Positions 4,124-64,000 of a DNA stretch of 64,000 bases are shown here, one piece after another. A model generated the notes under the pieces. That model searched no databases and was not told where the DNA came from. It saw only the letters and a program-made list of their open reading frames with translations. Within the stretch, counting starts at the first letter, position 1; every line of letters begins with the position of its first letter. The DNA is from Oopsacas minuta. Taxonomy: Eukaryota; Animalia; Porifera. The translations under genes and the position numbers were made by a program. The DNA lies in the NCBI GenBank assembly GCA_024704765.1, contig JAKMXF010000003.1, forward strand, positions 124,001 through 188,000, written 5' to 3'.

Positions 4124-4576
4124 TCAAACAATCTGAGAATCATTCTCATTAAGTAATTCAATTTGTTGAGGTGTCAGTGCTTTAGGTATCAATCCGATAT
4201 TCCTCGCCTTCTTAACTTCTTCTCTGAGCTTCGCTTGCATTTTCTTGCAAATACCGCTCTCATGTCTATCGATAATTCTACCTGTTGATGTAATGAATTG
4301 GCTAATAAGTAACACGTCTCTGTATGTGAATTCATCTAATCCCCGCCAGCATAATTGACAGCCTGGCCTCTTGAATACGTTACCGTCCTCTTCATATATT
4401 CCAGTAATTTTCTCTCTTACTAGCTTAATAGGGTCAGCACAATCTATAGGTTCACGATTGAATATTTGTGGCATACCTCGTTTCTCGTTTGGATCGAATT
4501 TCCATCTTCTCTGAGCTGAGATTCGAGGCAGAGATAATGTGTGTTTTGTAAGAGATCGGATTCCAGTTAATAACAT
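4124..4576 (-). CDS. MRPS18C: Mitochondrial ribosomal protein bS18m family, single exon
   Basis: CQLC...FTYRDVLLISQFITSTGRIIDRHESGICKKMQAKLREEVKKARNIGLIP is an S18 domain, preceded by a basic presequence-like N-terminus. The A/B/C subtype is uncertain. Confidence 0.8.
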   Translation of the reverse strand: MLLTGIRSLTKHTLSLPRISAQRRWKFDPNEKRGMPQIFNREPIDCADPIKLVREKITGIYEEDGNVFKRPGCQLCWRGLDEFTYRDVLLISQFITSTGRIIDRHESGICKKMQAKLREEVKKARNIGLIPKALTPQQIELLNENDSQIV

Positions 4577-4977
4577 ATCTTATACAAAATGAGTAAATTA
4601 TAAACTAGCGAGAGAGCATTTGACAGGGGACAGCTGTAATTACCAAGGAAAGGCCCCAAAATTACAATCTACACTGCGTCCATGACTTGTTAAGTGTACA
4701 TACACAAATGGGGCCTCTGGAAACGGAGGGGATAAATAGAGCGGATTCCCAGTCCCATACGTATGAACCTCAATAACGCTGAATTTGGCAGAAATGGGGT
4801 AGCATTTTCAGAGTCCCTTTCAAATAATAAAATAAACAATCAGCTACTTTCATGTAAATTATATCATTTCAATAATCAAAGTAAAATAGTCCGTAAATAT
4901 TCTATACGAATATTGGTATAAGAATTACAGTATTATGAATTTAAAATAACATAGGACTGATGTGAATGCATCGGAGA

Positions 4978-7900
4978 TCAATTTGATTTGGGAATTTTGT
5001 CTGCTGGTAAGTAGAAATCGTCTGTGCTTCCAAGAGTAGCTAAAGCATTATAATGTCTATCGTCTTCAGCAGATATGCTAATGATACGTTCAGGGGGGTA
5101 TTCACCTTGTGGATAATAGGTAAGAAAATCTTCCTTACCGAATGAGGAAATACGAGCTACTTTGATTTGTAAGTCTAGAGTGAAACCAAGCAGGAACATC
5201 TCAACCTAAAATAGTAACATGGAGTTAAATATGTGAGTTAACGGGCGAAAACCCGATGGAAATGTAAGTTTGGAAGTCAAACAAATTCCAGTGATATAAT
5301 AGCTGGTTAATACAAATATGTTACAATTCCATTGCAAGAAATGCTATCACAACATTATGTGTATTTGTGAAATAGCTAAGACATATCATGGTTGCTAACA
5401 TGTATCAAAAAATGGTAACTGAGAAATTACAGTAATCAGTCAAAGATTACACTAGTTTGTGTGTTACAAATATAAATCCCGGTCCCTATCCTTGAGAGTT
5501 CGAACTCTTCAGTAACCTCGCCCCTGGGGCGTGTTCATTAATACATATACAGTGTATGAATAGTTGAATAATTGTCCTTACACTGAAAAACTCGAGAAAA
5601 AAGTTTCTATTATCAATTCTTTAATATTTACTTACCATTTCTAGTCCACCAGAATCTCCAACATGGTTCAAATGATTAACGAGAAAATCTTCCAAATTCA
5701 TCGAATCTTCTCTAATGAAAAGGAAAAACATAGATTCAGGTACTTCTCCACCCTGAGAGTATATCTCCCAATATTTAGCTAACTCTATGAACATATAGAA
5801 CTTGAGTGCTTCCATAAGTGAGAAATCAAATATTTCCTTTTGCGTGTTGAGTTTACTGTATATGTATATCATACGGTTAATAGGCTCCCAACCTCTTACG
5901 TGATCAACCTACACAAACAAATTATAATTAGCACCAGAATAATCGGGTATTAGACAAATAAGCTAGTGAAACTCGCTCAAGCTCAAACACTCGGATAAGA
6001 GATACCCCTTCGGGAAACCAAAATCAGTAAATGCCAAGGTTGCAACCGAATAGTTCAATATCCGGTTACCAAGGGAATATCAGTATCCTGTATCCGGTTA
6101 CCAAGGGAATATAAGCATCCTGCATTCGGTTGCTATAAATATTAGGCTAAGCAACTATTCATGAATACTGATATTCGGTTCGATCGGTTTCAACCTTGGT
6201 AAATACGTACGTCTTATCCGAATACGGTAAATAAATACAAGACACCAGAGTAAGAATAAGGGTGATAGAAGTTATAGAGGAAGAGAATGTCGTACATATC
6301 AACCACCCAGTAAATAGCGAGTAGAAGATAAAATGATAATAAATCTCATCAGTAGTTAAGGAGCTAACAAAGTACAAATATTGTTTACCTCAAAAGCTAG
6401 ATTATCAATACACATCTCCAACACATCCTTCGTCTCTCCAAGTTTTTGAAATGAGGGTTTATTAGCAAATGACCATTTACTCAGAAATGGGTACTTCTCC
6501 ATCATAGGAGCAACGATCTATAATTAATAAGAGAGGGTCAGATAGAGCAATTTCTGGGAATAAAACGTAATTACCTGTCTGGCTTCGATTGGAGGTTTCA
6601 TATTGGCAAGAAAAGAACAAACATTGAAGTCTCGCACACAGAATGTTTGGAATAAAGTAGAACGAACAGCACAGTAGTTATCACCACGTATAGACATCAA
6701 GTGTGTATAATCCATCATCTCTAACTCATGATATCCCTATAGTATACATAAATAGCTACAGTAAACTCCGGTTATATAGAAATACCCGCTTTTATCGATT
6801 CTTAAATGGTACAAATATGGTCTCAAACCGTCAAAGTAACACATATTCCATCGGTTATAACGAATAAATGATCGCAGTCCCTTAAGCTTAGATATAGCGG
6901 GAGGTGTCTGTATATAGGAATTGCTTTAGCAAATAATCTTAGAATTCAAATAGCAAAAGAATACTCACATTTCTAACTCGTTTCGCATTGTCACTTGTTC
7001 CAATCCATTCCCTGGCTATATAATCACTGAATGTAATTGGGGAGTCTACGCTTCTTTGATGCAAATGAGTTTGTGTAGTGTCAAGGAGAACCTCTGAAGG
7101 AATAGGAGTAGTGTTGTTTTCATACCGATCAGTAACAAAATCGCCCTCATTTTTAGATATATTTTGTGGGACTATAGAGTCTTCATTCAGGGGGACAGCA
7201 TCATTGCCCTGTGGTTGATTTTGAACCTCATCGAAAGGTACTTGAGTAGTAGAAATTGTATTATTTTGTGAATGAATACTGAGACAATTAGATTCTATGA
7301 TGATAGTGTCGTGATCCATTTGTGCTGGGAGAGATGTACTTGGAGAAAAAGCTTGTGGAAGTTCAGGATTGCAACCAATATTTGTAAGATCAATATCTAG
7401 ATCCGTATTGTGTTCAGGGAGAGTTACAAAACTGTCAGAGGTTTGGAGAGGGGTCTGTTCAGGTGTCTATAGGCAAAATTAAATAAATCGACCCTTGCTA
7501 GCGTAGCAACTAGATGTGACATAGGAATTAGAAAATAGCTACATACGTAGTTAATACAATTAACTTGAGTGAATGACTTATTAATTAATGACACATTCAA
7601 TGATTAGACACAGCAAGCCTTATGACTAATAATTAAATATTAATTAGTTTCGAAGTAATTTCGGGTCTTACGTAATGCCTGAAATATGGAAACTTAAAGA
7701 AAACAAATTACTACAAAGTTATAACCTCCATTTTAGGAATGTGTATTATATAACTCACATTTCCGATAGAAGATATCAGTAGAGAATCTGGATAAGACGA
7801 TAGTAACTGTTGTTGTTCTTGTGTTTGTTGTTTATCAGTATGAATAGCTTCCTGTAACAATTGATAGTCTGCCGTATTTTTGGGATCATACAGAAATGTT

Positions 7901-14556: not shown

Positions 14557-17482
14557 TCAAATCCATCTAAGCTCTGTCATATCAATTACCTCAGATAATT
14601 CTCTACCCCCGATAGAGAATGAGAATTTAAGTTTCAATACAATTTCAATATCTTCCGGTTGTATAAGCAGGATTTGAGTTAGGACGGGACACGATTGGAA
14701 AGGAGTAAAGGGTAAAATTGATTGTAGAGATGGAGGGAATAATTTGAGCTTCGAATTCTTGGATGTTGCAGCGTGTAGGACAAATCGATCAATTCCAAAC
14801 GGACTTATATTTATCATGGAAATAATAGCTACTTTCAATTCAGGGGCGTTTAATATTGGTTCAATTAGTTTCCCAGTTGATAGAGTTAGTATAATATTAT
14901 CCTTGTTATATGCTAATACAGCAGGAATAGGGCAAAGCTGTATAGAATTGTTTGTAACTTCAACTGCGTCTAAATTATATGAACTAGGAATAGTTTGAAG
15001 TATTGGTTGGGGTAATTGGGGGTTTTGAATTAACGGAAGGTCAACTGATTTAGCGGATACCAAAGGATCTGGGGTCATTGAGAGAGGCATGGAATTGAAA
15101 GGACCAAAATCGTCCAGCAGCGAGGAAATATCCGAATTACCACTATGCTGTATTGGGATTGGACTAGGCTGTATTGGGATTGGATTAGGTTGTATTGGGA
15201 TTGGATTAGGCTGTATTGGGATTGGATTAGGTTGTATCGGGATAGGAGTAGGAACGGTAGAGCTAAGATCTAAGTCAATTAATGAATCCAGAAGAGAGTC
15301 GGTAGTAATATTAACTTGCGGTTGTATAACCGCAGTAGGAGGTGAAGATATAAGAGGGGGAATATCTTGACTATTCACTTGTCTTGTTTGATTTATATTA
15401 GCCATTACGGTCTCATACTTATCCAACACTTTAACTAGACCATCACTGCTAGTACATAGCTTGTTAAGTAGTACATCATCGTCTGTACATTGCTCTGCTA
15501 TTTTTTGGAGCTTTTCTCTCATTGTTACACATGATCTATAAGAATACAAATTATAATACAGTGGATACCTGTTATAAGAACATGCCGGATATAAGCACCA
15601 TCCTCTCGAAATCTGTTCTCATATATTCCTGTATATTTATACCGGTTATAAGGACATGTATTGCTACTCCGAAGGATGTTCTTATAACCGGTATTTTTCA
15701 ACATCACAGATGCCCGTTAGGAAAGGGGAGTTAGCGAATAGATCCATATCTAGAATGCTACGATTCATGGTATGTTATGTCCCCCGTCCGAGGGTGCTAA
15801 AATATGAATAAACATCTAGACAACTATTTGATACAATAGTTATTTAATAATCAAATAACCCAAAGAAATAGTTCAGACAATATAGCGCTGATATTTAAAC
15901 CACCAGACTTCTAATTTCTAATTATAATTCACTATTTGTAATGTGGTAGAATACTGACTCGGCGTTGCAGCATTGAGTCTACAAATTATAAATATTAATT
16001 ACATGTCTGCGGGTGTTAGTTTCAATGAATTTATACACGCAAGTAATCAGATGATGTAAATGGAAATTATCTACAAATAATCACAATTATTCGGCAAATA
16101 TCGAAGAGAATACGTTCGCTATTTTCTGTTTCAGGTGGATGTGAAATAAGTTTCCCCGGAGATGATTACGTGTATTTGGTATGTTCGGCATCCGCAGCCG
16201 CAGGACTATGAAATTGTAAATACAGTCAACTCCCGTTATACCGGAGCTCAAGGGACCGCGATAATTAGTTCGATAACCGATGTGATATATGTTACTTTGA
16301 CTAATTCCAGGCTTCGATATATCCGTGTTCGTTATAACAGGAGTGGACTGTAATTGAATTTTCCCTCACTTTTTCAGTTCTTCGATTAAGTCCCTCTCAG
16401 GCTGAGATGAGTTGAGTGAGAAGTGTCCTAATAGTTCATCCAATAGTTTAGCATTATTGTCTACTAGGTCAAGCTCCCTAGAGCGGTGCTGTAACTTCTC
16501 TAGCTTTATGTTCTCTCGCTTATATCTGTCCTGAATCATCTCGTTAGCTCTAACGAAATCTGTTCAAACAGGAATTTATCAAATAAATACTCGTGAGAAA
16601 TAGAACAACTATTTTGGGGACAATTCAACAGGAAATACAGTGGATACCACCCGGAACATGCCAGTTACAAGAACTCACTTGAGAGTAGCAATGCATATTC
16701 GTATAACCGGTATAAATATACAGGAATATATTAGAACCATTCTCCAGAGGATGGTGCTTAAACCGGCATGTTTTTATAACCGACATCCAATTTATTTAGA
16801 CCGATAAATACAAGACACCCAGGGTGTAGTGACTCCCTACTGTCTTTGGTTGCCCCCTATGTGTCTTACAACCCCTAGAATGCCTGTAAATCTTGTCACC
16901 TAATATAGAATATTTGAATATACCTTGTGGGTTTTTAGACTTGAGTAATCTCTCAAGAGTCTCAATCTCTCTCTCATCTTTGATAATTGAATCTCTAGCC
17001 GGCTCATCTAAAACTTGAGGAGGTGGAGCATCAGGTAGATTCCCTTCATCATCAATTAACCCCTCTTTCTTCAACATCTCATACGCGTCAAGGATTTTCC
17101 CTTGCTTAGGTAGTCCTCTCCTCCATTGAAAGAATAGCCCCCTTACTTTACCCTTAAGTTGTTCCGAGCTATTACTAGCGCTGTATTTTGGGGATATTAG
17201 CTTAATAAGCTCGTTCAATAGCTTAAACTTACCGACTTCATTATGAAACTTCACCCCACAATTCTTCACACAGGCCTCGATTACAGCTAGAGCCAATAAC
17301 TGAGTCTCTTCATCCTCCGATCGAAGTTTTGTTACGAGGACTTTTATCGCAGCTTGTGGACCCTCTGGCTCCTCATTGACTCTCTCACAGAATGACATCA
17401 CAAATTCCCAATCCTGAAATCTATTTGTTGTATTTTTGGCTTTGTTGAAGATAGAATCGAATCCATCATCCTTGGTTACCAT
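14557..17482 (-). CDS. GGA1: GGA clathrin adaptor (VHS-GAT-hinge-GAE), 3 exons
   Basis: Exons 17482-16924, 16559-16370 and 15535-14557 total 576 codons. VHS (QDWEFVMSFCERVNEEPEGPQ...CVKNCG...EVGKFKLLNELIKLISPKY), GAT (DFVRANEMI), clathrin box LIDLD and a C-terminal gamma-ear domain. Equally GGA1/2/3-like. Confidence 0.9.
15150..15246 (-). repeat. 21-nt tandem repeat encoding PIPIQP(N/S) about 5 times in the GGA hinge
   Basis: Repeated ctgtattgggattggattagg units in the coding exon. Confidence 0.9.
15559..15694. mobile_element. MITE family A, in GGA intron
   Basis: TA|CAGTGGATACCTGTTATAAGAACATG...TGTTCTTATAACCGGTA. Confidence 0.75.
16223..16350. mobile_element. MITE family B, in GGA intron
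   Basis: TA|CAGTCAACTCCCGTTATACC...GTTATAACAGGAGTGGACTG|TA. Confidence 0.85.
16638..16790. mobile_element. MITE family A, in GGA intron 1
   Basis: TA|CAGTGGATACC...TTTTTATAACCGACATCC; core in the opposite orientation to the 15559 copy. Confidence 0.7.
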
Positions 17483-17781
17483 GTTGGTGTATTGCTATGT
17501 TATTCTAATATTATATCAGTATATTTGATTATTAATAGTTGCCTCCAGTCCGGACTGAAGCAGGAAGTTGGTAAGAAACTTTACCCGAGGTATGATAGGG
17601 ACCATACTGATAATTCTGATTTCCTAGCCTCAGTCTGGACTGGACAACAGGTAACAAGCGACCCCAAGGATTAGTAAACTCAAAATGGAATAGAAAATTC
17701 AATTGAATAAACCACGAATAAATACGTTACTAATCGTACTAGCTATACCTACTGGGAGTTTTATGTAAGAGCTCTTTTGTA

Positions 17782-18621
17782 TTAAGCGAATCCTATAAGA
17801 GTATTTTCTATTATAATTACAGGAAAATATTTTCCACAGTGAAACCACAGCAAACAGGGAACTTCTGCAAATGGAGTGGAAAATAAACAGAGCGAATTCC
17901 TAGCCCGGTTGTCCCATACAAATGAACCCTCACAAACTGGGAATTTGGCAGAAACGTGGTTGCATTTTTCCGTTAGTGGCGGTCACACTGTATTTCACTG
18001 AATTTACCTTGGTCCATTTTACACTGCTTAAACATATAGTTAAGCCCCTCACAGAATTTGAGATCACTACTAGTCTGTGTACACTTGATGAAGTCTTCTA
18101 GCTCTTTAGCACAAGGTACTGCTCCTGCTTGTTGTTGAGTAGGTTGACTTATTTGTTGTTGATCCCTATAGAATAATAACAAATATTTACATAACTAATT
18201 TGTAATGAGAATAATCAGCGTACTTACATATAACCCTGTGAAGGAGCTGCTTGTTGTACTTCCTCTCCACTTCCTCCTCCACCCAATGATCCCACTAGTG
18301 CATGCCCTACTGTATGTCCCTATAATATTATCACAAACATGAATATGCGCTATACCTTTAGAGCTATTAATTATCAAAGTTGTCGGTTAGATGGCATACG
18401 ATACAACTTACAATTGCTACTCCAGCAGCAGTAGTAGCTATTTGTGACATCATGCTAGGTTGAGTTGGAGCGACTGCAGGAACTTGTGGTTTCATAGGGA
18501 CAGGCGGTGCGGCACTGGGAGCAGTGCTAATGGGACGAGACGTACCTCCGAAACCTCTACTAGGGGAGGGACTAGATTTAGGAGCCCCCATTCCAAAACC
18601 ACCACCACGTCTGCGAGGCAT
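17782..18621 (-). CDS. CHCHD2: CHCHD2/CHCHD10 (Mix17) mitochondrial twin-CX9C protein, 4 exons
   Basis: MPRRR...PSMMSQIATTAAGVAI/GHTVGHAL helix and CAKELEDFIKCTQTSSDLKFCEGLNYMFKQC; the last mini-exon, about 17792-17782, encodes GFA*. Confidence 0.9.
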
Positions 18622-19125
18622 ATCTCAGCTAATTAACTAATTGAACTACATAAGTATTCGCTATAAATAGAAACAAATGGCTGAGAGGTGATAACTATAA
18701 GTAATGACGGAAAAGCCCCCGCTCCTGCTTCTATTAGTGCTACTTACATGACGCATTACATAGCAAATTCTTGTGATTAATGTTGGTGTATAAATTATCT
18801 AATTATGCCTGGTGTCAATTCACTCCTGTTTGGACCGGGTTTGCCCCCCCGCTTGTCCATTGGACAGCACTATCATATATGAATTGCTCTGAATAATAAA
18901 ATTACCCTTAATTAGTTATAAGGAATGCCCGATGTATAAACGATAGATCTTTCTCATCAATCCTCCAAATAATTCTCCAGATCCAGCACTTCAATATATT
19001 TCCTGTAATCTGCCCTTTATAATAGTTATACAGGACTGAATGTCCGAATTATTTATCGCAACAGTTTACATAACAAAATAATAATAGTTTAATATCAATC
19101 AAAGTTTACAAATTTCTAAGAAAGT

Positions 19126-20841: not shown

Positions 20842-21174
20842 TAAATAACAAATTCTACTAAAATTGATTCCTCAGAAAAAACATATATACAAATGTGTGA
20901 AAACGTTTTTACAGTATAACATATGACATACACAAATGGGGTGTCAGGGACGCCCAAAAATGTTACCCCGTTTGTGGAGATTACATTGTATAATTGTTGA
21001 TACATTATTACTACGTCCAGAGGCGAAATGCGGGTAAATCTGGTGGCTGAGATGGCACAATTTGTAAGGCAAGTTCTCAAAAATTGTAATCCAAGAGACA
21101 TATAATACCTCAAGTAGAACATTGAATTAATAGTTTGTGATTAGAATTAATATATTACACTCAGCAGTAAATTC

Positions 21175-23432: not shown

Positions 23433-23559
23433 GTTGCTAGGCATTTGCACATAAATATTTAAATAATTATGTAACGAAAATTATAAGATAAGACTTAAAC
23501 TACACAATCAACTTCAATAGGAAATCACTACACAATACTCTAGTATGTTTTTACGTTGG

Positions 23560-37879: not shown

Positions 37880-38538
37880 CTTAAGCAGATAAGCTAATAT
37901 AATATTAAGTAATAAAACAAGCAATTATCCCTTTTATACTATCTCTTATCTTAGGCCACTTTTAATGACGTCATTCAATTAATATAGCTGCAAATCAGAT
38001 ATAGTAAGAAGCTATAAGATATGTGTATTTATAGAATTCAAGTATCCGTTCCATTTCCAACTTTAAACTTTAAGCAAACATCACTCTTAATACTATTGTA
38101 TCATCATTATATAATATTATAAATATATTGCTCTATTAGAGGATTACGGAGAGATAACTCAGATAAAATGTACTGCTTCCTGCAAACAAGGAAATCCTAA
38201 TCATTCGATACAATATCTATTCGAATAAGACGTACACTCGGATAGTACGTAATAAATTTGTTTCTCGAAGGTAGTGAAACTTCCACAAAAGGGGGGCCTG
38301 TGGGAACAGGGAAGCATTTTCGGCGTCACTAGCACCACGTTAGTGGAGGTTACACTGTATTGCACATTTCAACGGTAGTACGTATGATTCTAATTAAAAT
38401 TACAAAAGTCTTTCTATCGCTAACTTATCATTAATAATAATAAGATGGTAGTACACAGTAATTATCGACCTATTCAACCCTACAGGATTATAACAAAGTG
38501 AATAACAATTATCACATGAATACATGACGTCATAATAA

Positions 38539-51132: not shown

Positions 51133-54100
51133 ATGACGTCAGAAGTAAAGCTACTAAATCTCCAGAAACAAGTTGATGACTTGAAACGAAAACTCCGGGA
51201 TAGTACACAAGATAAAGTACAAGCTATCAACCGTAATAATCAGGATTGGGAGAGGAAGCTAGCTTCTCAAGTATCAATAGCTCTGAAGAGATCACAAGCA
51301 GAACACGATACACAGATAGCTTCATTGCAGGCTGATATAGATTTACGCGTAGATAGAGAAATAGCTACAGCTACTAGTGGGAAGGATGCAGAGATTAGGA
51401 AGATCAAGGATTCTATTGGTAAAAATACAGAGTAAACCTCTCCAGTGTAGTTATTCTCCATTTGTATACATAAAATCACACTTAAATTGTACAAATATGT
51501 TCCTAAACCGCCATAAGTAACAATTTTCATCGGTTATATCGAAGTAATTATCGCGGCCCCTTGAGCATCGATATAACAGGAGCAGACTATGCTAATATAC
51601 TTTATTTCTATTCTTAGATAACGACAAGGGAACTGCAGTCAAATTGGCTTGCTTCAAAACAGAAGACAAATACTCAGAAATAATTAAACAGATAGAAGGG
51701 GAGTTTAAGGCTCGAGAGGCTGCTCTAACACGCGAAATATTTCATCTCTCAGGAGATAGAGAAGAAGTCAATAACCAACTCGCATTACTCAAGCAAGCAG
51801 ACCTCGAAAAGGCCGCGATAATTAAAAATCTGAATTTCGAACATGAAAAATCCGTGAAAGAACTGATTGAAGTTAGCAAACAAGATCAATTGAAGGAATA
51901 CACAAAATTCAAAGCAATTGAAAAATACGCACAAGACAAGGAAAGCGAGGTAAAACGACTAGAAGGAAAAATCGATATTCTCAAAGTCGATAAAGAAATT
52001 CTAGAAAAACAATTGAAAAAGCGGCAATCAACTCCTGACACGTCACCCTCCGTCCCTCGTATAATGCGTTACACAGAACGTGAGAGAGAACTGACTAAGA
52101 AAATACGTGATCTTGAGGATAAGGTTAAAACACTACATCGAGGTAGTAGTAGTCTATCTAATTATTCTCTTGACACTATATCATCACCGTATAGCTATAC
52201 CGAGAGTACTGCATCTCCTACAAGGTCTATTAGCTCGGATTCTGGTGAGAAACCTAGTCAACTCAAACGGCAAGTTAAGGAACTTAAAGAACAAGTTATA
52301 ATGTTAGAAGATAAATGTTATGCTTTGCAACAAAAAAGTAATATCCCTGAAAGAGATTCGTTTACTAAAGAAAATATTGAAGTTGAATATCTGGAGCGTG
52401 AGCTACAGCTTAAAGAAAAATATCACAAAGAAATTGAAGTGTTAGAAAACGAAGTGAGAGAGTTGAGACACAAAATACGTGATTTATCTGTTAACACATC
52501 GATTTCTGGATCTACCATTGATGATATGCAAACGATAATTGATGGCTATGATGCACGTTATAAGAAATTATGTAAAGATTCCATTATGAATCAACAGGCA
52601 TATTCGTTATGGTGCGAGACTGACGCTGTTAAGAATCTAAGGAATGATTTGCAGGACAAAATTGAAGAAACGGAAGAGTTGAAATCTCAGAATAATTCGC
52701 TACAGATTAAGTGTGATAATTTTAAGGAGGAATATAGTTCTGTTCTGTCTCAGAATAATCAGCTGATCGAGGAGAGAGAAATCGCAATTTCTGAGAAAAA
52801 CGCGGTTGAGACTGAATTGAAAGTACTACAAGAAACCATGAATACTAAAGCAGAACGAATCGAGGAATTGGAAATTAATGATAGCGAACTTGTCTTTCTT
52901 AGAGAAAAGAACGAAAGTTTCAAATTAGAACAGGAAAGTTATTCTCTTATAATAGAGAAACAAAATAAAGAAATTGATTTACTAAAATCCTATGAATCTG
53001 AAGCAAACGACTGTAAAGTTCTTCAAGAAAGCTGCGAGCAGTTACGAGAGAAAATAATCCATGAACAGACCAAAGAGAAAGAGCTAATGGTAATCATACA
53101 AACTTTAGAAGATCAAAACTCTTACTTACAGAGCGAATTACAATCGAAAGACGATAAACTTTCTGACCTTACATCTGTTATATCTAATCTCACTGATAAA
53201 CTAAAAGTACAAAAAAGCTCTGAAATGAATGAGGTTAACCGTAGAGAAGGTCATGATATATTATTCTATCCCCCGATGTACAAAAATAACAGAAATAATA
53301 ATAACAATGATGACGAGATGAATTTTGAAGCGATTGAAAGCCCTATTACAACTGTACAGAAAATAGAATTGGATACAGAGTTGTATAAATCTGAAGAAGC
53401 ATATAACAGTGAAGCTCCACTGTCTCTCTCAACAGCTGATCAGTTATCAACTGACTCTACGAATAGTAGCGATGCACAAGATGAAATATTTCCTCTTTCA
53501 GCTGTTGGTGAGACAGATCAGTTGATCCCCGATCAGACCTATCTCCTAGAAGATGTGAGCATAGATGAATGGTCCCACGCGTCAGAAGAGGAGGTCATCT
53601 ATACCCCTAAACCTCCAGATGTCTCTCCAATTCCGACCCCGGACAAGGCATCAAAAAATTCCACCCCTGACCTGTTCCTTATTCGGTACAACTACGATCC
53701 TCTCGTATCCTCTCCCAACCCACATCCTGAGCAAGAGCTCTCCCTTAAAGCTGGGGATTGTGTATACATATATGGGATTCCAGATCAGGACGGATTTTAC
53801 CTAGGAGAGCTAAATGGGGGAAAGAGAGGACTGGTCCCGTCTAATTTTGTCGAGAAAATGCCCTATCCTGGGTTCCAAAACGATAGGAACCTAGATGTCC
53901 CACAAAAGAACATTCCCCCTACTCCTCCCACAGTTGAGGACAGGGGAACAGTGGGACCATTGGACCTATACACACAGGGTACCTCAGATCAGCTGCTACA
54001 CACATACACTTCAAATCTGAGTAATATTGTTGAGGAAGACGAATCACTTTTGGATAACTCAAATCTAACAAGAATTTCTGGAAACATTTCAAGTACAGAG

Positions 54101-55780
54101 TCAATTGACAGATGTCAAACTGAGGATAATTCCTCAACAGAATCACTCGATAAAATTACTGATATACAAACTCCAGTAGCTTCACCGCGACATATCCCTC
54201 AAACAGCTGATTTACGTGTCAAATACACTGACAATGACGTAGAATTATCCTGGACTGTACCTCCTAATATGCTCGACACCATACAAGGATATCATGTTTC
54301 AATTGGTAGTGAAATTACACAATATATAGAAGGAGCGAGGAACACATTTCTATCGATGAATTCTCTAGAAGATAAGCTTAATCCAGGTAGATACACACTA
54401 GTTATTTGTACAGTTACGAACTATGGATATTCTGATCCTGTAGAATGTACTATAGACACAACACTACTGAATCCTCCGTATGAATTGAGGGTAGTAGAAG
54501 ATGGAGCTTGTGTGTTAATCAGCTGGTCTTCACCTGATACATTTTCCCTGTCAAGTCCATTAGTATCATTCACAGTGTATTTGAATGATACTATATTAAC
54601 TAGTGTTGATTTCTCAGATTTCTTGGTAAGTAAGGGTGTGTCAATTCCTCGTGTTGATCTTTTGAAGTTTTACGAATCTAGCCCCGATCAACAAATGAGT
54701 CTCACTGTCAAATCATTTCTGAGTGACGGACGTTTCTCATGTCCCAGCGAAATTCTAGATCTCCCTCTGCAGTTTCTAACACGTTTTGAGTCAACTTCCG
54801 GTAGCATGACAGTTGAATCTGAATCCAGTGAAGGATGTTCCAGACATTCCACAAGCTCTGAAAGTGAAGTATTAGAAGTATTTCGTAGATCTTCTATAGA
54901 ATCTGATCAGCTGTTGAAAGCAAGACAAAACACTTCGGATGTAGTAAGCAAACCTCCTCTAGACAGACATACACAACTTATCCAATCAACGGGCTCCAAA
55001 CAGAGGCAGAGTTTCACACCAAATGAAGAGAATCTTTTCACAGAGCTAGAAGCACAAGGGGAGCCAGATTTCTCTCAGGAGATGTTTGCTCTACAACAAA
55101 ATTCAAGTCAATCTGATAGTGACGATGATAAAGCTCTGTATGCTGAGATTCCCCCTCTTGACGTCACTGTTACTTACTACGTAGCTTTATACGACTATAA
55201 TCCTGTAGACCAATCACCGAATAGAGGCGAATATCAATCTGAATTGCCTCTTAAGAAAGGCGAAGTTATAGCTATTTTCGGTGGAATTGATAATGAAGGA
55301 TTTTTCACTGGACAAGTTGACACAAAAGTTGGGTTAATTCCTTATAATTTGATTGAAAAGATTAACTTGTGCGATGTGAGCGGAGAGACAAGCTCAGCGC
55401 TTTTGTTCCAAGCAACTAAACAGGCCTTCCCCTCTCGAAATTTCACAGCTCTCTACTCCTACAATCCACGTACTGACTCTCCAAACTGTGATGATGTTGA
55501 TGACGAGCTCTCTTTCAAGAGTGGTACCTCCATCTCCATATTTGGAGATGTTCAAGACGATGGATTCTTTATTGGAGAACGAGACGGACAACTTGGATTT
55601 GTCCCTTCTAACTTCATCGAGCCTGTCGATCATATTAAACCACAAGACACCAAACAATCGACAAACGAATCAACAAATACAAAAGGCGCTACCCACCCAC
55701 AAGGCGAAATTCCTAAATCGAACAAAAATATTTTAGCTAAAACAAAAGGCATATTCAAAAGTCTTTCCAAGAAATCCTGA
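51133..55780 (+). CDS. RIMBP2: RIM-binding protein (coiled coil - SH3 - FN3 repeats - SH3 - SH3), about 1480 aa, 2 exons
   Basis: Exons 51133-51418 and 51618-55780. Three RIM-BP-type SH3 domains (RYNYDP..SPNPHPEQELSLKAGD..DGFYLGEL...GLVPSNFVE; ALYDYNP; ALYSYNP) and FN3-like segments (VELSWTVPP, VLISWSSP). Confidence 0.9.
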
Positions 55781-56285: not shown

Positions 56286-57840
56286 ATGGGCTGTGGTTCT
56301 AGCTCTCAATCTGATACAACACATTCCATTCAACAAACATCAGTAACAACAACAACAACAACAACAACAAACAAACAACATGTACCTTCTCTTGACACAA
56401 CAGCACTTTTCAGACAAGATAATACTCAACCTGATATCAAACAAACTACTCATTCATCCCATAATGTTGATACAGCTATAAACGAAGATATCCAACTTAA
56501 GCGTATGAGTTTATAAATATACCTAAATCTGACATTACTTTCATGTATAACTTTTCCCACAGCTATTCAATCAGATACACAGAATACATCAAATGACATA
56601 TCTATATTCGCTAAATCAGACAGATTAGTTAAAGTGAATTCATTATACAATCTGGGTTCGATATACATATATGCTACTTCAAGAGTTGAATACCATATTT
56701 GTATAATTCAGACTCCGATATAATCGGGTATTTTGATATATCTGCCTCTAGTATAACAGGAGTGACTGTATTCACATATACACGTGGATATATACCTTGC
56801 TATATTCCTGTAGTTACAGGAAGAACACAAAACTGATATAAAGGAAGATCTACAGTTGAATGGGAATCAAATCTTAGCTCAACAATTACGAAATAAAGTT
56901 AGCTAACCCTTTAGCTCAAAATTCATATTATATATTGGACAAAATTTCTTATTTAGCAACTTGACTGTAAATCGATAAATAAGGAAAGAACTAAAAGAGA
57001 AGTGAAATCAGCAAATGAAATTAATGAATCTCAGAAACAAGAACACAAGGTTACTAGAGTAATGTATAGGTTATACATTTCATACCCTTGACATCATTAG
57101 CACCGACCCTGGGGGCAAGGGCCTCGGCGGCCCTGGATGGCAACTGAATGAATTCAATGGAATGTATGTTTCCGTGTTTTTATAGATTGAAGAGGATTTC
57201 ATTGCTCATAAACTGGTTAAAAGTAAAGAAATATCAGATACACAAAATAACAACAGAGAAAATAATGATACACATGCAAGCAGAGTTAGTATTTATGTTT
57301 AAAATTTACTTACGAGTTACGACACTTTATTTTATCAATAATATCTTCTAGACTGATGTATTAGATGATACTTATATTGACTCAGAAGAAGAACCCGTTA
57401 TATTAGAGAATGATACGTCTTATAACAGAGATACTGGTGAGTAGTTTGCATACGTTCATATAAGTACAGGTAAAACAGGTTTAACACCAGAAGTTCCCAG
57501 TTTCCACAGGCCAGTGTATGGAAGTTACACTCTACCAATATTTAAACTGTTCGTTGTTTAGGAAACATTTGGGGAGACTATTATCCATCAGAACAACCTG
57601 ATCCCTTAGATCTTGAAGCACCAGACTCGGTGATTATTATGTGATATACCATATATGGTATATGTGTATATTTATTTTAGACCTCTCTTATCAACTATTA
57701 AATCTACTTTCTATCTTTATGATAACGCATATTTGTCTGTATATATCTCTTTATGGAATTACACACCCAGTAATCTTACTAAGAATATTTTCAAAGATTA
57801 TGATGACCAGTTCCACAAGAAAATAGAGCATGTGGGGTGA
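56286..57840 (+). CDS. Unknown multi-exon protein with MGCGSS N-terminus; 3' end unresolved
   Basis: Exons 56286-56502, 56563-about 56631, about 56814-56897, about 56958-57059, about 57186-57287, about 57352-57436 and about 57562-57629 join in frame. Poly-Thr and acidic low-complexity sequence; no family recognised. Confidence 0.55.
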
Positions 57841-58157: not shown

Positions 58158-58805
58158 ATGAATTATAACAGAGGACCAAATGTATCGCATGCAGATGACA
58201 TGGAACAAATGCGGGGTCAGATCGACAAGAAAACTGACGAGTCTCTAGCCGCTACCCGAAGGATAAAACAGATAGCTGTCGAGACGGAGCGTACCGGTGC
58301 GGACGCACTCATCACTCTACACGAACAAGGAGAACAGCTAGACAATGTTGAAGATAATCTGGAGGACATAGGCTCTGCCATGAAGAGAACAGACAAGGAA
58401 TTGACAGAACTTGAAAAATGTTGTGGGATCTGTCGGCTACCAGGTAGTAGAGTTAAAAGCTACCAAAAATCTAAAAACTACAAACAAGCGTTCGGAGCAA
58501 AGGCGCGTAAACAGGAAATGATTAGTAGCCAACCAGGCAACTATGGTGCAACCGGGAATGTGGTAACAAAACAACCAAAAGGCCCAATAATAAACCGAGT
58601 TACAAATGACGTCAGGGAAGATGAGATGGAAGGAAATATGCAAGATGTTAACAGAATGTTGGATAACATGAAAAACATTGCGGGGGACATGGGTGATGAA
58701 TTGGACAGACAGAATGACCAACTTGGGCGTATTGAGAAGAAAATAGTAGCAAATGAGGAACATATTCGTGTGGCTAACTATAGGGTAGCAAAACAAATGA
58801 ATTAA
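58158..58805 (+). CDS. SNAP25: SNAP-25/23 family Qbc-SNARE, single coding exon
   Basis: TDESLAATRRI...LHEQGEQLDNVE, Cys cluster LEKCCGIC, and second SNARE motif REDEMEGN...MGDELDRQNDQLGRI. Confidence 0.93.
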   Translation: MNYNRGPNVSHADDMEQMRGQIDKKTDESLAATRRIKQIAVETERTGADALITLHEQGEQLDNVEDNLEDIGSAMKRTDKELTELEKCCGICRLPGSRVKSYQKSKNYKQAFGAKARKQEMISSQPGNYGATGNVVTKQPKGPIINRVTNDVREDEMEGNMQDVNRMLDNMKNIAGDMGDELDRQNDQLGRIEKKIVANEEHIRVANYRVAKQMN

Positions 58806-59111: not shown

Positions 59112-59175
59112 TCCTATCCTGGACAAACAAATAAATAACATTTCTTATTACGCATTTCAATTAACTATATAAGCA

Positions 59176-59910
59176 ATGGCCGGGAATGAGAAAACATCAT
59201 TCCGTCTAAAAAAACGTTCAAAGAAGAGCGCAGTTAACGCTGTTCCCTTAGAAAAATTCGACTACTTAACTCTGCGTAAAAACACTCACTGGCTGGCTAT
59301 TATTGGCTATGTACAGCCATTATTTCGTGAACCGTTCTTATATCCACGTGGCATGGATCCTGTGGACGTTAACAAACGTATAATACTACTACAAAGTAAT
59401 AAGGAGAATGAAGGTAAACTACAGTATGTGCTTCAAGAGGAAGTTAAGCGGTTTTTAGTTGCTATAAGGGACAGTTTGAAGAATTTATCCGGTCCTGAGT
59501 TATTGAATAAAATCGCTTCAATTTGGAAATCTTTATTTGCTGTTACAATACCGTGCATGACTGCTCTATTCTCTCAATTTGAGACTAAGATGCCTGTGCA
59601 TAAGATTATAATGAATATTTTTCGTGACGTCATCTTGTTTAAGGTTAAAATCAAAGATAGTCTTGTCGATGCAAGAAAGGAAATTCAAGACGCAGAGTTT
59701 CCAGACCGGAGTTTAATACCTCGCGAAATTACACACATGTTTCTGATCTTACAAATGGAGATCGATTTCTATCCTGAGTTACAGGAAATGATTATTTTAG
59801 CCATGGATGATCAGTATGAGCCTATATGGGCCCCTGTAATCTCTATTATAGAGGAGAGATGTGATTCTCCTGAATTCTCTGAAGTTGGAGTTCAGAACAA
59901 AATTCAATAG
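59176..59910 (+). CDS. PRR5: PRR5/Protor (HbrB-like domain) mTORC2-associated protein
   Basis: ELLNKIASIWKSLFAVTIPCMTALF...IFRDVIL...IPREITHMFLILQ follows the PRR5 family pattern (recognised from memory). Confidence 0.65.
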   Translation: MAGNEKTSFRLKKRSKKSAVNAVPLEKFDYLTLRKNTHWLAIIGYVQPLFREPFLYPRGMDPVDVNKRIILLQSNKENEGKLQYVLQEEVKRFLVAIRDSLKNLSGPELLNKIASIWKSLFAVTIPCMTALFSQFETKMPVHKIIMNIFRDVILFKVKIKDSLVDARKEIQDAEFPDRSLIPREITHMFLILQMEIDFYPELQEMIILAMDDQYEPIWAPVISIIEERCDSPEFSEVGVQNKIQ

Positions 59911-60364
59911 AATATTATTTGTGAGAGTTATGAATATTATATCATTATAATATACGTAGATTCTTTGGAAATATTATTGTTATCTAATTGGTAAGTATAT
60001 AGGGGATCGACTGCACGGTTTGGATTAATCAGGGGAGGTGTTGGAACCATGCACATATATAATCTGGTGGAATATGACTCTAGGAGCAGTTCAAACGTTA
60101 CGTAACGTTACCTAGGGGTAAAACTTCTGGAATTTTGCGTGACATAACGATAGAATGACCTCTTTAGTATGTACCAATAGAAGTCCCATTGGTCGCTACA
60201 ATTCATCTTGTCGTTTTCAAGAGGTAAATTAACAAGATAAGTTCATAAGCTTGTACATAAGAGTTTTAATCCCGAAACACCTCCCCAGCTGAACATGGGA
60301 AGGGTTTGAAATACGTATACGTCTAAGTATTTTACGATTCTTATTACTTCATTAGATCTATTCT

Positions 60365-61252
60365 ATGCTCCTTCGAACATTCCGATCTACCATACCAGCA
60401 GTTAAGAGAATGTATTCTCAAATAGCAGCATATGATAAATACACTACGCTAAAGGTAACCGCCCCATCTGAATACGTATGTCATGTAGAGCTGAATAGAC
60501 CTGATAGTCTTAATTCTATGAATAAACAATTCTTCACAGATCTCCGTCAATGTTTCGAGCAAATTTCCTCTGATTCTTCTATTCGTTGTGTAATGTTATC
60601 CGGTGCAGGGAGATTCTTCACATCGGGATTAGATTTAAAAGATGCAGCATTATTGACAAGTGATCAACCCGATGTAGGTAGGAAGGGGTTGGCTCTCCTT
60701 AGGGGGAGTATAACACCATTTCAAGAGTCGATTTCATCGCTTGAGAAGTGTTCTAAGCCTGTCGTGTGTGCGATACACTCCGGCTGTGTCGGGGGTGGGG
60801 TAGACTTGGTTACAGCAGGGGATATTAGGCTCGCTACTTCTGACGCTTACTTCCAAATAAAAGAGATTGATATTGGCCTAGCAGCTGATATAGGAACGTT
60901 ACAACGATTTCAGAAAGTCATTGGTAACGACAGTATATTCCGTGAATTAGCGTACACATGTCGAAAACTGTTTGCGGATGAGGCATTCAAAATTGGTTTA
61001 ATTAGCTCAATTTTCGTTAATAAAGAAGAAATGATGAAATTTGCATTGGAAACTTGTACCATAATTGCTAGTAAAAGTCCTATAGCAATACAAACTAGTA
61101 AGAAAAGTATTAACTATTCGAGAGATCACTCGGTTAAAGAGGGGCTGGAGCATGTAGCTGCATGGAATATGACGATGTTACAATCTGAGGACCTTATTAA
61201 GGCTGTTATGGCTGCTGTCAATAAGGAAAAACCGGTATTTTCTAAGTTGTAA
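60365..61252 (+). CDS. ECH1: Delta(3,5)-Delta(2,4)-dienoyl-CoA isomerase, intronless
   Basis: HVELNRPDSLNSM, FTSGLDL, GGGVDLVTAGDIR, FQIKEIDIGLAADIGTLQR; presequence-like N-terminus and C-terminal SKL. Confidence 0.95.
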   Translation: MLLRTFRSTIPAVKRMYSQIAAYDKYTTLKVTAPSEYVCHVELNRPDSLNSMNKQFFTDLRQCFEQISSDSSIRCVMLSGAGRFFTSGLDLKDAALLTSDQPDVGRKGLALLRGSITPFQESISSLEKCSKPVVCAIHSGCVGGGVDLVTAGDIRLATSDAYFQIKEIDIGLAADIGTLQRFQKVIGNDSIFRELAYTCRKLFADEAFKIGLISSIFVNKEEMMKFALETCTIIASKSPIAIQTSKKSINYSRDHSVKEGLEHVAAWNMTMLQSEDLIKAVMAAVNKEKPVFSKL

Positions 61253-61392
61253 TTGTTTTGTATGTGATTTGCTATATAGACTAGAGTATATTGCGCATTA
61301 ATTGGTGTTTATTGTCAAATTCTTTGTTTGATTCATTACATGAACTATACTCACGCAGTTAATGCTTCCGAAATATCTAAACTAGTTGCTAG

Positions 61393-62965
61393 ATGTGTGC
61401 GAGACGATTTACTATTGAAGAAATTCCTCTCACAGAACTGGATCACACTGCTTATGCAGTACTCTCCAGACATCTAGATGCTCTACACACACGTAGAAAG
61501 GATTGGAAAGGAATAGCTAAAGCAATTAACCTAGATTATAAGGAAATGAATTTGGTAGAAGCTTCTAACGAGCATATGAAGAAGCTAATTGAAATATGGA
61601 ATAGATCACCACCTTATCCGGTACTCAAGGATTTGTTAGAAGTATTAGAAGAATTGGGTTGTGATTTAGTTATTACTGAGTTAAGAGAATGTTTTGAGGT
61701 GAGAAATACAGTGGACTGTTCGCCAATTAGCATGTCGATAATTGCGCGATTTCCCCTTGCTAATAGCGGAATTATTTCCAATACAAATGGACTCTTAAGT
61801 TTCTTGAAAAAACTAACTAGCAGGCGAACACCACTGTATGTATTCATTTTCAATACACTTTTCAGAGTTGAGAATGGTGTCACAATTGATAAACATTCCT
61901 GCCATTATTTTAGACTCTACCTTGTACGAATAAGAAAACTTCATCTATAACTCACGATGTACCACCACAGCCTATTCAAGTATCAGGTCCAACTCTCATA
62001 AGCCCTCAAACAGTGACAACTAACAATAACTTACCAGTAAATACAGTTACAAATTATGATAGCTCTCCAATAGCAATACCTTCTAATTCGCCAGTTCCTA
62101 GCTCAAAAGAATATGAGACTATATCTAAACCAATAGTCACGGAAATGAGTGAGAAAGATTTACAAATTAAAGATGGATTTTTCGTGTCTTTTCACGAGAA
62201 CGATGCTCATATAGGAAGAGAAATTATCGATGAAATGAGGCAGAAAGGCATACAAATATATTCACAAGATGATATCTATGCGGGAGATTCGGAGATACAG
62301 CGACGTGAGGAATTATTCGTTATGTCTAAATCAGTCATAGCAGTTATATCACCTGATTATTGTGAGAAGGAAGGTTATCATCAGCTGGAGGCTCTGAGTA
62401 AATTAGTACCTTGTGAGTTGATTCTGGATATAGTCGCGATTTTTACTCGATTTTCAGATTTATCTGTACAGTCAACTCTCATTATATTGGAGCTCAAGGG
62501 ACCGTGATAATGACTTCGGTATAACTGATGTACTATATGTTACCATATTTGTACAATTCAGACTTCAATATAAGCGGGTATTTCGAAATATTCGTGTTCG
62601 ATATAACAAGATGCCACAATTATCGTAGTTATTGATATTTCAATCATTTACTCATATTATTTTCTATTGCTTATGAGAACCTGAAAGTACCAAATTCGAA
62701 CTCATGATAGCCATTGATAAAATGAGAAATTAAAGAATACCATTTTGCAAAAATTTTGCTCTGATTCTACACATATCCGAGGTATCAGACATTTATTCAT
62801 ATTTATTATTTGTTATTATTTCTAGCTGTAGGCAAGAGGACATTCATTCCTGTGATATACAAGCAAGTAGAAGTTCTCCCCTCTTTCATTAGGACCAGAT
62901 CTAAAGTGGATTGGAGGAGACCTGATAAGTTTACACATTTGTACAATTCTATTAAAAATATCTGA
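61393..62965 (+). CDS. MYD88: MyD88-like adaptor (death domain + TIR), 3 exons
   Basis: Exons 61393-61698, 61914-62412 and 62826-62965 join in frame. Death domain (LSRHLD...DWKGIAKAINL...LIEIW...LLEVLEELG) and TIR (FFVSFHEND, DIYAG, VIAVISPDY, KRTFIPVIY). Confidence 0.8.
62469..62612. mobile_element. MITE family B (partial), in MyD88 intron 2
   Basis: TA|CAGTCAACTCTCATTATATTGGAGCTCAAGGGACCG...GTGTTCGATATAAC. Confidence 0.75.
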
Positions 62966-63845
62966 TTTTTTGATTTTCAGTTGTGTGTTCAACTGAATAG
63001 GTTTGTATATTTTGTTTTTTATCATATATTTCTACCAACAAAAGTCTTTCTATATTTTGAAACACCACAACAGTGATTAATTCTCATTTATGATATAGTG
63101 TAACCTCCACAAACGGGATGCCAGAGACGCCAAAAAGTTTCACAATAATATGACGTTACAAATATTACTCCAAATTGCTTTTACAACAACTTGGATAAAG
63201 CTTGAACAAAATTTTGGATTTTTCACATCCGCTGGCTCAATAAATATAGTAAACTTCCTGCTTTCCTAACGGATATTAATTCAAGTAAATTCTAGCAAAA
63301 TGAATACTCTAATAGTCTTATTTGGATATGGCACTTGCCATTCCATAATAACTAAATTTTCTTTATTATTAACTCACTTCTCTTATATTAATAATCTGTA
63401 ACTAATTCTATTTTAAAACACTTTTCAAGAAGCATTTCTAATTACCACAATTCTGAACCCATTTCTTAGTAAGAATTTAAATAACAGCTAAGAGAATCCA
63501 AAAGGCCAAATTCTATTAGTAATCGATACCACTCTCTTCTCTCAAATCTAGCTATCTCTCTTATAGACCTTGCACTAATTCAATTCATGATATGCCTATA
63601 GAACTTCCAATTTATTCTTATAAAAGCCAAGAATTTATGCAAATATTATCTATCCATTTCTTGCCATTTTTATAATTATTGCTTACATTTTTTATTGTAA
63701 ACATACAAAGAAGAACGGTAGTAGTTAATAGGTGTGAAAATGTATTTAATACTTTAGAAAACATTTCAATTCGTCTAGAAATGATATTATAAGAATTCTC
63801 GCTATTATTTGTCTCTCTCTTAGCTTTTTATTCCTAACATACGAA

Positions 63846-64000
63846 ATGTCTGTTGGAGCCAGAAGGATGAAGGGACAAGGTGACTACCAACAGCTGAGAA
63901 ATGAGCTCGAGGCGCTGAAACACAAACTAGCTCAATCACGAAACGCCGTAAAAGACCGCGAACTCCTTGACGTAGCAGGCAGTGTAGAGCCTCTGCCTAA
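63846..64000 (+). CDS. G-protein beta subunit N-terminal helix (GNB5/GNB1-like), truncated by the window end
   Basis: LRNELEALKHKLAQSRNAVKDRELLDVAGSVEPL resembles the G-beta N-terminal coiled coil; only about 51 codons are visible. Confidence 0.55.
   Translation, partial: MSVGARRMKGQGDYQQLRNELEALKHKLAQSRNAVKDRELLDVAGSVEPLP

Follow-up and report, generated by a model that had tools for sequence, protein, structure and literature searches.

Fifteen unrelated genes on one strand: an apparent directional gene cluster in the glass sponge Oopsacas minuta

Operons have been described in a few animal lineages (nematodes, tunicates, chaetognaths and flatworms) and are short, and arrays of at least 15 co-oriented, unrelated genes are, to our knowledge, known only from protists that transcribe their genes polycistronically. 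A spliced leader in glass sponges is said to have been first reported by Douris et al. in 2010. The present work deals with a gene array of the glass sponge Oopsacas minuta (Hexactinellida), carried by a stretch of 64,000 nt (assembly GCA_024704765.1, JAKMXF010000003.1:124001-188000; GC content 33-41%), hereafter called the window. Between positions 4124 and 47678, this array comprises 15 unrelated protein-coding genes and a tRNA-Arg gene, all on the minus strand, the sole plus-strand exception being GFM2, nested in an intron. The directional architecture of the window was confirmed. It is best read as directional gene clusters in an animal, i.e., packed unrelated genes flanked by two strand-switch gaps, a tiny convergent one and a large divergent one, and the array is best read as something other than one promoter-driven operon.

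Spliced-leader trans-splicing has been published for glass sponges (PMC10282587; 2021 review). In Aphrocallistes vastus, a trans-spliced leader of about 37 nt was found on 4% of long cDNA reads, and the many differing leader sequences were put down by the authors to Nanopore error (PMC10282587). Also described in this species were long cDNA reads said to “run the two genes together”, at about 1:100 relative to separate transcripts, and were viewed by the authors as run-on errors (PMC10282587, section 4.5.1). The same work reported extensive microsynteny and unusually few inversions between A. vastus and O. minuta (PMC10282587). According to the 2021 review of spliced-leader lineages, operons are unreported in hexactinellids. 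The O. minuta genome paper (PMC10280926) contains nothing on operons, polycistronic transcription, spliced leaders or gene orientation; neither of the two glass-sponge genome papers (PMC10280926, PMC10282587) discusses gene orientation, the word “operon” occurring only within a title of a reference list, and a wider literature search returned nothing on the co-orientation of glass-sponge genes.

Genes and strands were re-derived from open reading frames (ORFs) and Pfam, together with the GenBank gene calls on JAKMXF010000003.1 (Table 1). Our own gene calls were used for 14.6-31.4 kb and for everything past 53.9 kb; the CD225 gene and the OTULIN-like Peptidase_C101 gene were added, with gene spans, from the GenBank calls, and the start (about 30615) and stop codon (23560-23562) of PSMD2 were read by translation. 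Names backed by Pfam are MRPS18, GGA (VHS/GAT), CHCHD2, BECN1 (APG6), SNW1, PSMD2, GFM2, the two Fe-ADH paralogues, TMEM237, the EF-hand MICU-like gene, ATP5PD, TBP, MTMR (phosphatase and FYVE), the RIMB1_N coiled-coil gene, RIM-BP (SH3), the SNAP25-like gene, ECH1 and MyD88 (Death and TIR). An Rfam search of the window returned nothing except the tRNA. The 15 minus-strand genes and the tRNA that the original prediction had listed from 47678 down to 4124 were thereby recovered, in name and in strand, as was GFM2 as the only exception, lying antisense within an intron of PSMD2. The same prediction had counted seven genes from 51133 onwards, all on the plus strand; their strand was upheld, and five or six of them could be vouched for.

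The minus-strand run is delimited on both sides. On its right lies a head-to-head switch, the largest gap of the window, followed by a plus-strand array of at least six genes; on its left, plus-strand genes resume below 3946 after a tail-to-tail switch that had previously gone unmentioned, with at least four plus-strand genes beyond it, two of which adjoin the window on its left outside edge (GenBank calls). Stop-to-ATG spacers range from 127 to 2,080 bp, with a median of 454 bp. Values of 127 (PSMD2-SNW1), 140 (ECH1-MyD88), 185, 288, 333, 370 and 380 bp agreed with those announced earlier, while spacers of 228 and 299 bp, also announced, could not be located; the remaining spacers measure 401, 454, 457, 490, 493, 504, 659, 679, 1107 and 2080 bp. 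The probability of about (1/2)^14 that had been attached to the single run overstates its significance: under random orientation, a run of at least 15 genes is expected 0.5 times in a genome of 16,413 genes, and a run of at least 20 genes 0.016 times. The significance belongs to the whole neighbourhood, and not to the 15-gene run alone. Indeed, this neighbourhood of 25 genes shows two strand switches in 24 adjacencies (P = 1.8e-5 under random orientation), i.e., P of about 0.012 once corrected for the ~656 such blocks of the genome.

Conservation of the arrangement was examined in two hexasterophoran ENA assemblies, sp1 (ERZ25071281) and sp2 (ERZ20067936), in which genes were called at the ORF level. 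For MTMR and for the last SNW1 exon, the nearest homologues were found on long contigs in several ENA assemblies, with 73-85% amino-acid identity. Both order and orientation are kept in sp1, from RIM-BP across the divergent switch to the coiled-coil gene, MTMR, TBP, ATP5PD, CD225, MICU, TMEM237 and ADHFE1, and then through GFM2, PSMD2, SNW1, BECN1, CHCHD2 and GGA; GFM2 is nested in sp1 and sp2 alike. In sp2, BECN1 has moved upstream of MTMR, onto the opposite strand, and Mutator and DDE_3 transposase genes come after SNW1; despite this rearrangement, MTMR, TBP, ATP5PD, CD225 and ADHFE1 remain co-oriented. Three lineage-specific extra genes were found, all in the sense direction of the array: a gene of 1,302 aa (DUF7932; L008:3972-7880) between PSMD2 and SNW1 in sp1, an ORF of 237 aa between TBP and ATP5PD in sp2, and an MFS_1 gene nested in SNW1 intron 1 in sp2 (L007:5468-6880); coordinates L004:16063-16776 and 3895-4323 also belong to the lineage-specific differences of the relatives. 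The distance between PSMD2 and SNW1, 127 bp in O. minuta, amounts to about 1.5 kb in sp2, and sp1 has the whole DUF7932 gene in between, with 470 bp from its stop to the SNW1 ATG. In these assemblies, the shared direction is thus conserved whereas the tight spacing is not, so that conserved tight linkage, the one operon criterion that could be cleanly tested here, is lacking.

RNA data consisted of assembled contigs, and not of raw reads, from one run (X4) over positions 17650-23649, i.e., over the three genes SNW1, BECN1 and CHCHD2; coverage holes and contig depths are weak evidence in data of this kind and were weighed as such. Runs X1 and X2 are genomic DNA, with a flat depth of ~70-100 through introns and spacers alike, and X4, from the same sample, was taken as RNA on the basis of its exon-following coverage, its GT..AG joints (minus strand; 17791/18007, 18164/18227, 20304/20662 and 22190/22299) and its exon-exon overhangs, such as the one at 22669, the end of SNW1 exon 1. 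No X4 contig was found on 18650-19049, that is, on 400 of the 504 nt of the BECN1-CHCHD2 spacer. On one side of this hole, BECN1 RNA stops within about 76 nt past the stop codon, and an ATTAAA located 33 nt past that codon fits this short 3' end; on the other side, CHCHD2 RNA has a genome-matching 5' end at most 28 nt ahead of its ATG. Summed contig depth is 36k-70k for CHCHD2 vs 1.7k-3.9k for BECN1, located upstream of it, and the genes of the array are expressed at very different levels. SNW1 intron 1 was assembled unspliced, at a depth of about 120-130, which indicates that nascent RNA is visible in this run. The SNW1-BECN1 spacer is covered, one contig (20895-21223) reaching to about 54 nt from the BECN1 ATG, although such contig coverage cannot demonstrate one single molecule. 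No leader was seen among the six loose ends of X4 contigs that were listed (244 more exist), and no X4 contig extends by 20 or more unlike letters beyond its match to the genome. Transcript contigs bearing a leader were also sought through the exact products of MTMR, MRPS18 and ATP5PD, and the sole match was the GenBank contig itself. Logan contigs of more distant sponges, which came from other samples and might be either DNA or RNA, were set aside as unsuited to the search for a leader.

The sequences that precede the genes were compared in the three species. Upstream regions of orthologues are nearly unalignable, save for a TAG located 4-14 nt ahead of the ATG, which is kept in SNW1 (three species), BECN1 (TAGTAG), CHCHD2 (ATTAGC) and GGA (ACATAGC; TAG at 17495-17497). 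In SNW1, it occupies 23437-23439, 4 nt ahead of the ATG, with an AT-rich TATTTAAATA about 30 nt ahead. BECN1 has its TAGTAG at 20855-20860, 13 nt ahead of the ATG, and a TATAWA about 48 nt ahead, both of which recur in sp1; the TAG of CHCHD2 (18629-18631) is likewise kept in sp1, and in MyD88 a TAG immediately precedes the ATG within the 140-bp spacer that follows ECH1. Each of these TAGs might either be a trans-splice acceptor or coincide with a transcription start. TATAWA was found 15-60 nt ahead of 11 of 38 starts vs 12% of control windows (p = 0.004). The starts concerned include those of the two genes on either side of the divergent switch as well as of the internal genes CD225, MICU and BECN1, and many internal genes are devoid of it; the CD225 box, like that of BECN1, recurs in sp1. 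RIM-BP bears TATAAATA about 28 nt ahead of its ATG, and 95 bp next to the ATG of the coiled-coil gene, including TATATAA, are kept in sp1. A role of the TAG as an initiator element was considered and dropped: the TATA-to-TAG distance varies from 17 to 43 nt (hand count), which makes a fixed TATA-initiator module unlikely.

Downstream of the genes, AATAAA and ATTAAA are missing from eight of 13 scanned spacers of the minus run (4577-45974), in which they are rarer than composition predicts, as we estimated from base frequencies; neither occurs in the 127-bp PSMD2-SNW1 spacer. O. minuta may thus use a non-canonical poly(A) signal. TGTA/TGTGTAG-like strings are common soon after the stop codons in the 13 spacers. 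With regard to base composition, the sense-strand AT skew is -0.115 in minus-run spacers vs -0.037 in introns, plus-run spacers being unskewed; read on the plus strand, the spacer skew is +0.115 in the minus run and +0.008 in the plus run, with no change of sign across the divergent region. This skew decides neither on transcription nor on replication.

Taken together, these data lead us to favour, tentatively, an arrangement of packed and mostly separately initiated genes, in which a shared direction would make leaky termination harmless and possibly useful via trans-splicing. Mechanistically, most genes would have a 5' end of their own, formed some 10-60 nt or less from the ATG; a subset of them have TATA-like boxes, and others the conserved TAG a few bases ahead of the ATG. 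Termination would be leaky in such a compact genome, and selection would then keep a common direction: read-through into a same-sense neighbour would be harmless and could be rescued by spliced-leader trans-splicing at the TAG, whereas transcripts running on into a neighbour of opposite sense would do harm. Leaky termination is suggested by the scarcity of poly(A) hexamers, by the covered SNW1-BECN1 spacer and by the two-gene reads of A. vastus (~1:100). The preference for separate initiation stems from the empty BECN1-CHCHD2 spacer, the jump in abundance, the internal TATA boxes, the unconserved spacing and the low leader fraction in A. vastus, as well as from CHCHD2, where nothing points to the upstream RNA required by a trans-splice acceptor. 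The spacer hole at 18650-19049, the excess of CHCHD2 over BECN1, the internal TATA boxes and the unconserved 127-bp spacing likewise argue against a single unit initiated at 47.7-51.1 kb only.

Several observations sit uneasily with mostly separate initiation. Known cases of extreme co-orientation, in kinetoplastids and dinoflagellates, go with polycistronic transcription and spliced leaders. Upstream of SNW1, BECN1, CHCHD2 and GGA, nothing but the TAG is conserved, and the five RNA-confirmed cis-introns all end in TAG|G, so that a TAG ahead of an ATG looks like the 3' splice acceptor of this genome. A YAG is present within 15 nt ahead of 24 of 38 starts vs 37% of control spacer ATGs (p = 8e-4); in O. 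minuta alone, this is the case for 12 of 22 starts, and an upstream YAG at “almost every gene” is thus untrue in the window. A long conserved promoter-proximal block, of 95 bp, exists at the head gene of the array only. On the sense strand, T is in excess in each of the 13 minus-run spacers, which would be expected of largely transcribed DNA. The RNA base consists of the contigs of one run over 6 kb, with unreliable holes and depths and with 244 unlisted loose ends, and we only infer a selective reason for the shared direction.

Some of these observations would be at home in true polycistronic units. The array as a whole, or sub-blocks of 2-5 genes with short spacers, would then yield a single precursor from a promoter lying upstream, the divergent region at 47.7-51.1 kb serving the first block; spliced-leader trans-splicing at the TAG would make the downstream 5' ends and would be coupled to the 3' processing of the preceding gene. 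Such units would be akin to the operons of nematodes, tunicates and chaetognaths or, at the extreme, to the directional gene clusters of kinetoplastids. This explanation, which we regard as a strong rival though a less likely one, would account for a co-orientation far beyond chance and conserved in relatives, for spacers down to 127 and 140 bp, for an acceptor-like TAG that is enriched, conserved across species and identical to cis-intron acceptors, and for a conserved 95-bp upstream block confined to the head gene. The RNA-covered SNW1-BECN1 spacer, the sense insertion of all the extra genes of the relatives (DUF7932, the 237-aa ORF and the nested MFS_1) and the analogy with kinetoplastids and dinoflagellates also speak for it, as do the dicistronic long reads (~1:100) and the leader of about 37 nt of A. 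vastus (PMC10282587). By contrast, it would not predict that 400 nt of the BECN1-CHCHD2 spacer are devoid of contigs in the very run where an unspliced SNW1 intron was assembled, nor that CHCHD2 is far more abundant than BECN1 upstream of it while showing no sign of the upstream RNA stretch needed for a trans-splice branch point. The TATA boxes found within the array, of which the BECN1 and CD225 ones recur in sp1, the unconserved tight spacing, the six listed X4 loose ends free of a spliced leader (244 more exist) and a leader on just 4% of A. vastus long reads (PMC10282587) point the same way. The RNA contigs and TATA boxes likewise argue against the stronger version, in which hexactinellids would have kinetoplastid- or dinoflagellate-like units genome-wide, with starts mainly at divergent switches and mRNAs freed by TAG trans-splicing; this version is unlikely. 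The median spacer, 454 bp, exceeds the intercistronic regions typical of nematodes and tunicates. Shorter operon-like pairs (SNW1-BECN1, PSMD2-SNW1 and ECH1-MyD88) are possible. Of the long directional transcription units proposed by the original prediction, the directional layout stands and is conserved in sp1 and sp2; in a spliced-leader lineage, directional units are a reasonable hypothesis, and the further step from co-orientation to long polycistronic units is conjectural.

The shared direction might also have a cause unrelated to mRNA synthesis, such as alignment with replication forks (origins at divergent and termini at convergent switches) or a low inversion rate combined with directional insertion. 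We know of no animal precedent for such a cause, which counts against it. The contrast between a large divergent gap and a tiny convergent one would be compatible with an origin and a terminus, but the plus-strand AT skew of the spacers is positive on both sides of the divergent switch (minus run, +0.115; plus run, +0.008). According to the A. vastus paper, inversions are few and microsynteny is extensive between the two glass sponges (PMC10282587); a low inversion rate, however, preserves an arrangement and does not create the co-orientation of ancient unrelated genes, and we consider this type of cause very unlikely. Chance, i.e., one long run in a compact genome, is hardly credible: a run of 15 or more genes may well occur by chance in a genome of this size (0.5 expected), but the 25-gene neighbourhood with its two switches (P = 1.8e-5, 0.012 corrected) and the arrangement kept in relatives speak against it. 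Mostly separate initiation of packed genes hence remains the explanation that we prefer.

If the directional bias extends genome-wide, it would add a hitherto undescribed trait to the genome of an early-branching animal; it would offer a concrete and cheap test for sponge operons, as public RNA reads and annotation exist, may account for the unusually low inversion rate between glass-sponge genomes, and would bear on the co-evolution of compaction, leaky termination and trans-splicing. Kinetoplastid- or dinoflagellate-like units, if truly present genome-wide, would be without precedent among animals and might explain the rarity of inversions. If, on the other hand, every gene has its own promoter, the directional bias still needs explaining.

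Other features of the window are listed in Table 1. The N-terminus of the coiled-coil gene resembles the N-terminal exon of RIM-BP (58% over 48 aa; L005:3787-3930 vs window 47529-47678), which supports the view that these two genes, head-to-head on either side of the divergent switch, may be paralogues. ADHFE1-A and ADHFE1-B share an inverted stretch of 509 nt (2321-2829 and 32196-32704) with 92% complementarity; the pair is far more alike than would be anticipated of old paralogues, which suggests a recent duplication or gene conversion. The hinge-coding exon of GGA (15144-15252) contains a 21-nt tandem repeat, in at least four overlapping copies. In CHCHD2, RNA contigs splice out the stop of the long ORF (17973), placing the true C-terminus and the 3' end further down; given the splice 18007->17791 and an adapter-tagged RNA end at 17712 (X4), the CHCHD2-GGA gap is about 230 bp, and not 490. 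A 3' intron of SNW1 at about 21220 was considered and dropped, as the C-terminus seems conserved in relatives. Run X5 (“organism B”; 19135-23636) corresponds to a very close relative of O. minuta, 3-5% different, mostly at third codon positions, with one intron replaced (107 nt vs 69 nt in O. minuta) and the same PSMD2-SNW1 adjacency; a single X5 contig runs from SNW1 exon 1 through the 127-bp spacer into the 3' end of PSMD2.

Repeats were observed in introns and spacers. Elements of ~180-200 bp with inverted ends (TACAGTCAACTCCCGTTATA...), on both strands, look like a family of miniature inverted-repeat transposable elements. A second dispersed repeat, with the core ...ACAGTGTAACCNCCACWAACGG...AAAATGC...CCCATTTGTG, lies just past the stop codons in several spacers; its CHCHD2 copy sits in the spliced-out 3' intron, and copies are cross-joined at 17928/20970 in the DNA contigs of runs X1, X2 and X5. 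The near-palindrome GGGTATCCC/GGGATACCC has three copies in 64 kb (14339, 36692 and 39352), all in minus-run spacers, at a variable distance from the next ATG. The GGGTATCCC palindrome and GC-rich spacer islands were considered as promoter elements and rejected, since alignment shows that the islands are dispersed-repeat copies whose distance from the ATG is not constant. In BECN1 intron 1 (20250-20650) and SNW1 intron 1 (22850-23049), the depth of the DNA runs is about 1,000-2,500 vs ~75 elsewhere, indicating high-copy repeats.

Table 1. Genes, strand switches, selected spacers and repeats of the window (positions in nt from the first letter of the window).
Feature	Position	Strand	Basis or remark
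FAD_binding_4 gene (FAD oxidase)	429-1979	+	GenBank call, Pfam
ADHFE1 paralogue A	2207-3946	+	GenBank call, Pfam
Convergent (tail-to-tail) switch, ADHFE1-A/MRPS18	3947-4123	.	177 bp; GenBank calls
MRPS18	4576-4124	-	Pfam, gene calls
OTULIN-like (Peptidase_C101)	13877-4978	-	GenBank call
GGA	17482-14557	-	Pfam
CHCHD2	18621-about 17712	-	Pfam, RNA contigs
CHCHD2 3' intron	17792-18006	-	GT..AG in RNA contigs; takes out last codons of the ORF; contains dispersed repeat
BECN1-CHCHD2 spacer	18622-19125	-	504 bp
BECN1	20841-19126	-	Pfam
SNW1-BECN1 spacer	20842-21174	-	333 bp
SNW1	23432-21175	-	Pfam
PSMD2-SNW1 spacer	23433-23559	-	127 bp, tightest head-to-tail
PSMD2	30615-23560	-	Pfam, ends by translation
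GFM2 (mitochondrial EF-G2)	24941-27244	+	Pfam; nested antisense inside PSMD2 intron
ADHFE1-B	32866-30904	-	Pfam, gene calls
TMEM237	34422-33052	-	Pfam
MICU-like	36573-34803	-	Pfam (EF-hand)
CD225	37879-37031	-	GenBank call
ATP5PD	39036-38539	-	Pfam, gene calls
TBP	40291-39530	-	Pfam
MTMR	43894-41399	-	Pfam, GenBank call; 831-aa ORF
tRNA-Arg(TCG)	44953-44879	-	tRNA search, Rfam
RIMB1_N coiled-coil paralogue	47678-45975	-	Pfam, gene calls
Divergent (head-to-head) switch, coiled-coil gene/RIM-BP	47679-51132	.	3,454 bp, 33% GC, largest gap
RIM-BP	51133-55780	+	Pfam (SH3)
Small MGCG... ORF	56286-56516	+	ORF
SNAP25-like	58158-58805	+	Pfam
244-aa ORF	59176-59910	+	ORF
ECH1	60365-61252	+	Pfam
ECH1-MyD88 spacer	61253-61392	+	140 bp
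MyD88 (Death+TIR)	61393-62507	+	Pfam
TACAGTCAACTCCCGTTATA elements	16221-16355, 24693-24861, 28578-28644, 31212-31401, 35212-35393, 37505-37649, 48292-48418, 51481-51588, 56670-56761, 62467-62624		
ACAGTGTAACCNCCACWAACGG/CCCATTTGTG repeat	4768-4808, 17911-17968, 20940-20990, 38317-38360, 63093-63136		

With regard to known systems, the locus shares with the operons of nematodes (C. elegans SL2), tunicates (Ciona, Oikopleura) and chaetognaths an animal lineage with spliced leaders, co-oriented unrelated genes, some spacers of 127-185 bp, an acceptor-like TAG just ahead of the ATG and, in the relative A. vastus, rare dicistronic RNAs. It differs from them in the size of the array (15 genes vs typically 2-8), in most of its spacers (300-700 bp) and in its internal TATA boxes, and it is known from gene layout, and not from a polycistronic precursor or leader-bearing mRNA. 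Short intercistronic regions of the operon type are indeed present (127, 140, 185, 288 and 333 bp), most others being of 370-680 bp; classical intercistronic regions are shorter than the latter. Like the directional gene clusters of kinetoplastids, it consists of unrelated genes on one strand between divergent and convergent strand-switch regions, with intergenic distances of a few hundred bp and a tRNA gene within the array, in a spliced-leader lineage. Unlike them, O. minuta has TBP and TATA boxes, its expression levels and RNA coverage suggest separate units, and the leader, carried by all mRNAs in kinetoplastids, was found on 4% of A. vastus long reads (PMC10282587). The unidirectional blocks of dinoflagellates (Symbiodinium, Amoebophrya) are similar in their long co-oriented runs, their strand switches and their spliced-leader host, but dinoflagellates are protists with unusual chromatin and a universal spliced leader, whereas O. 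minuta is an animal whose genes have an ordinary structure, with cis-introns. Some compact eukaryotic genomes, such as that of yeast with its reported bicistronic transcripts (PMC8573964), have overlapping or read-through transcripts and no operons. O. minuta is similar to such compact genomes in its short spacers, and occasional low-frequency run-on transcripts are another likeness, but neighbouring genes are oriented almost at random in the yeast type, and a strong directional bias is the new element here. As an architecture, the locus most resembles kinetoplastid clusters and dinoflagellate blocks and, as a lineage with leaders and short spacers, animal operons.

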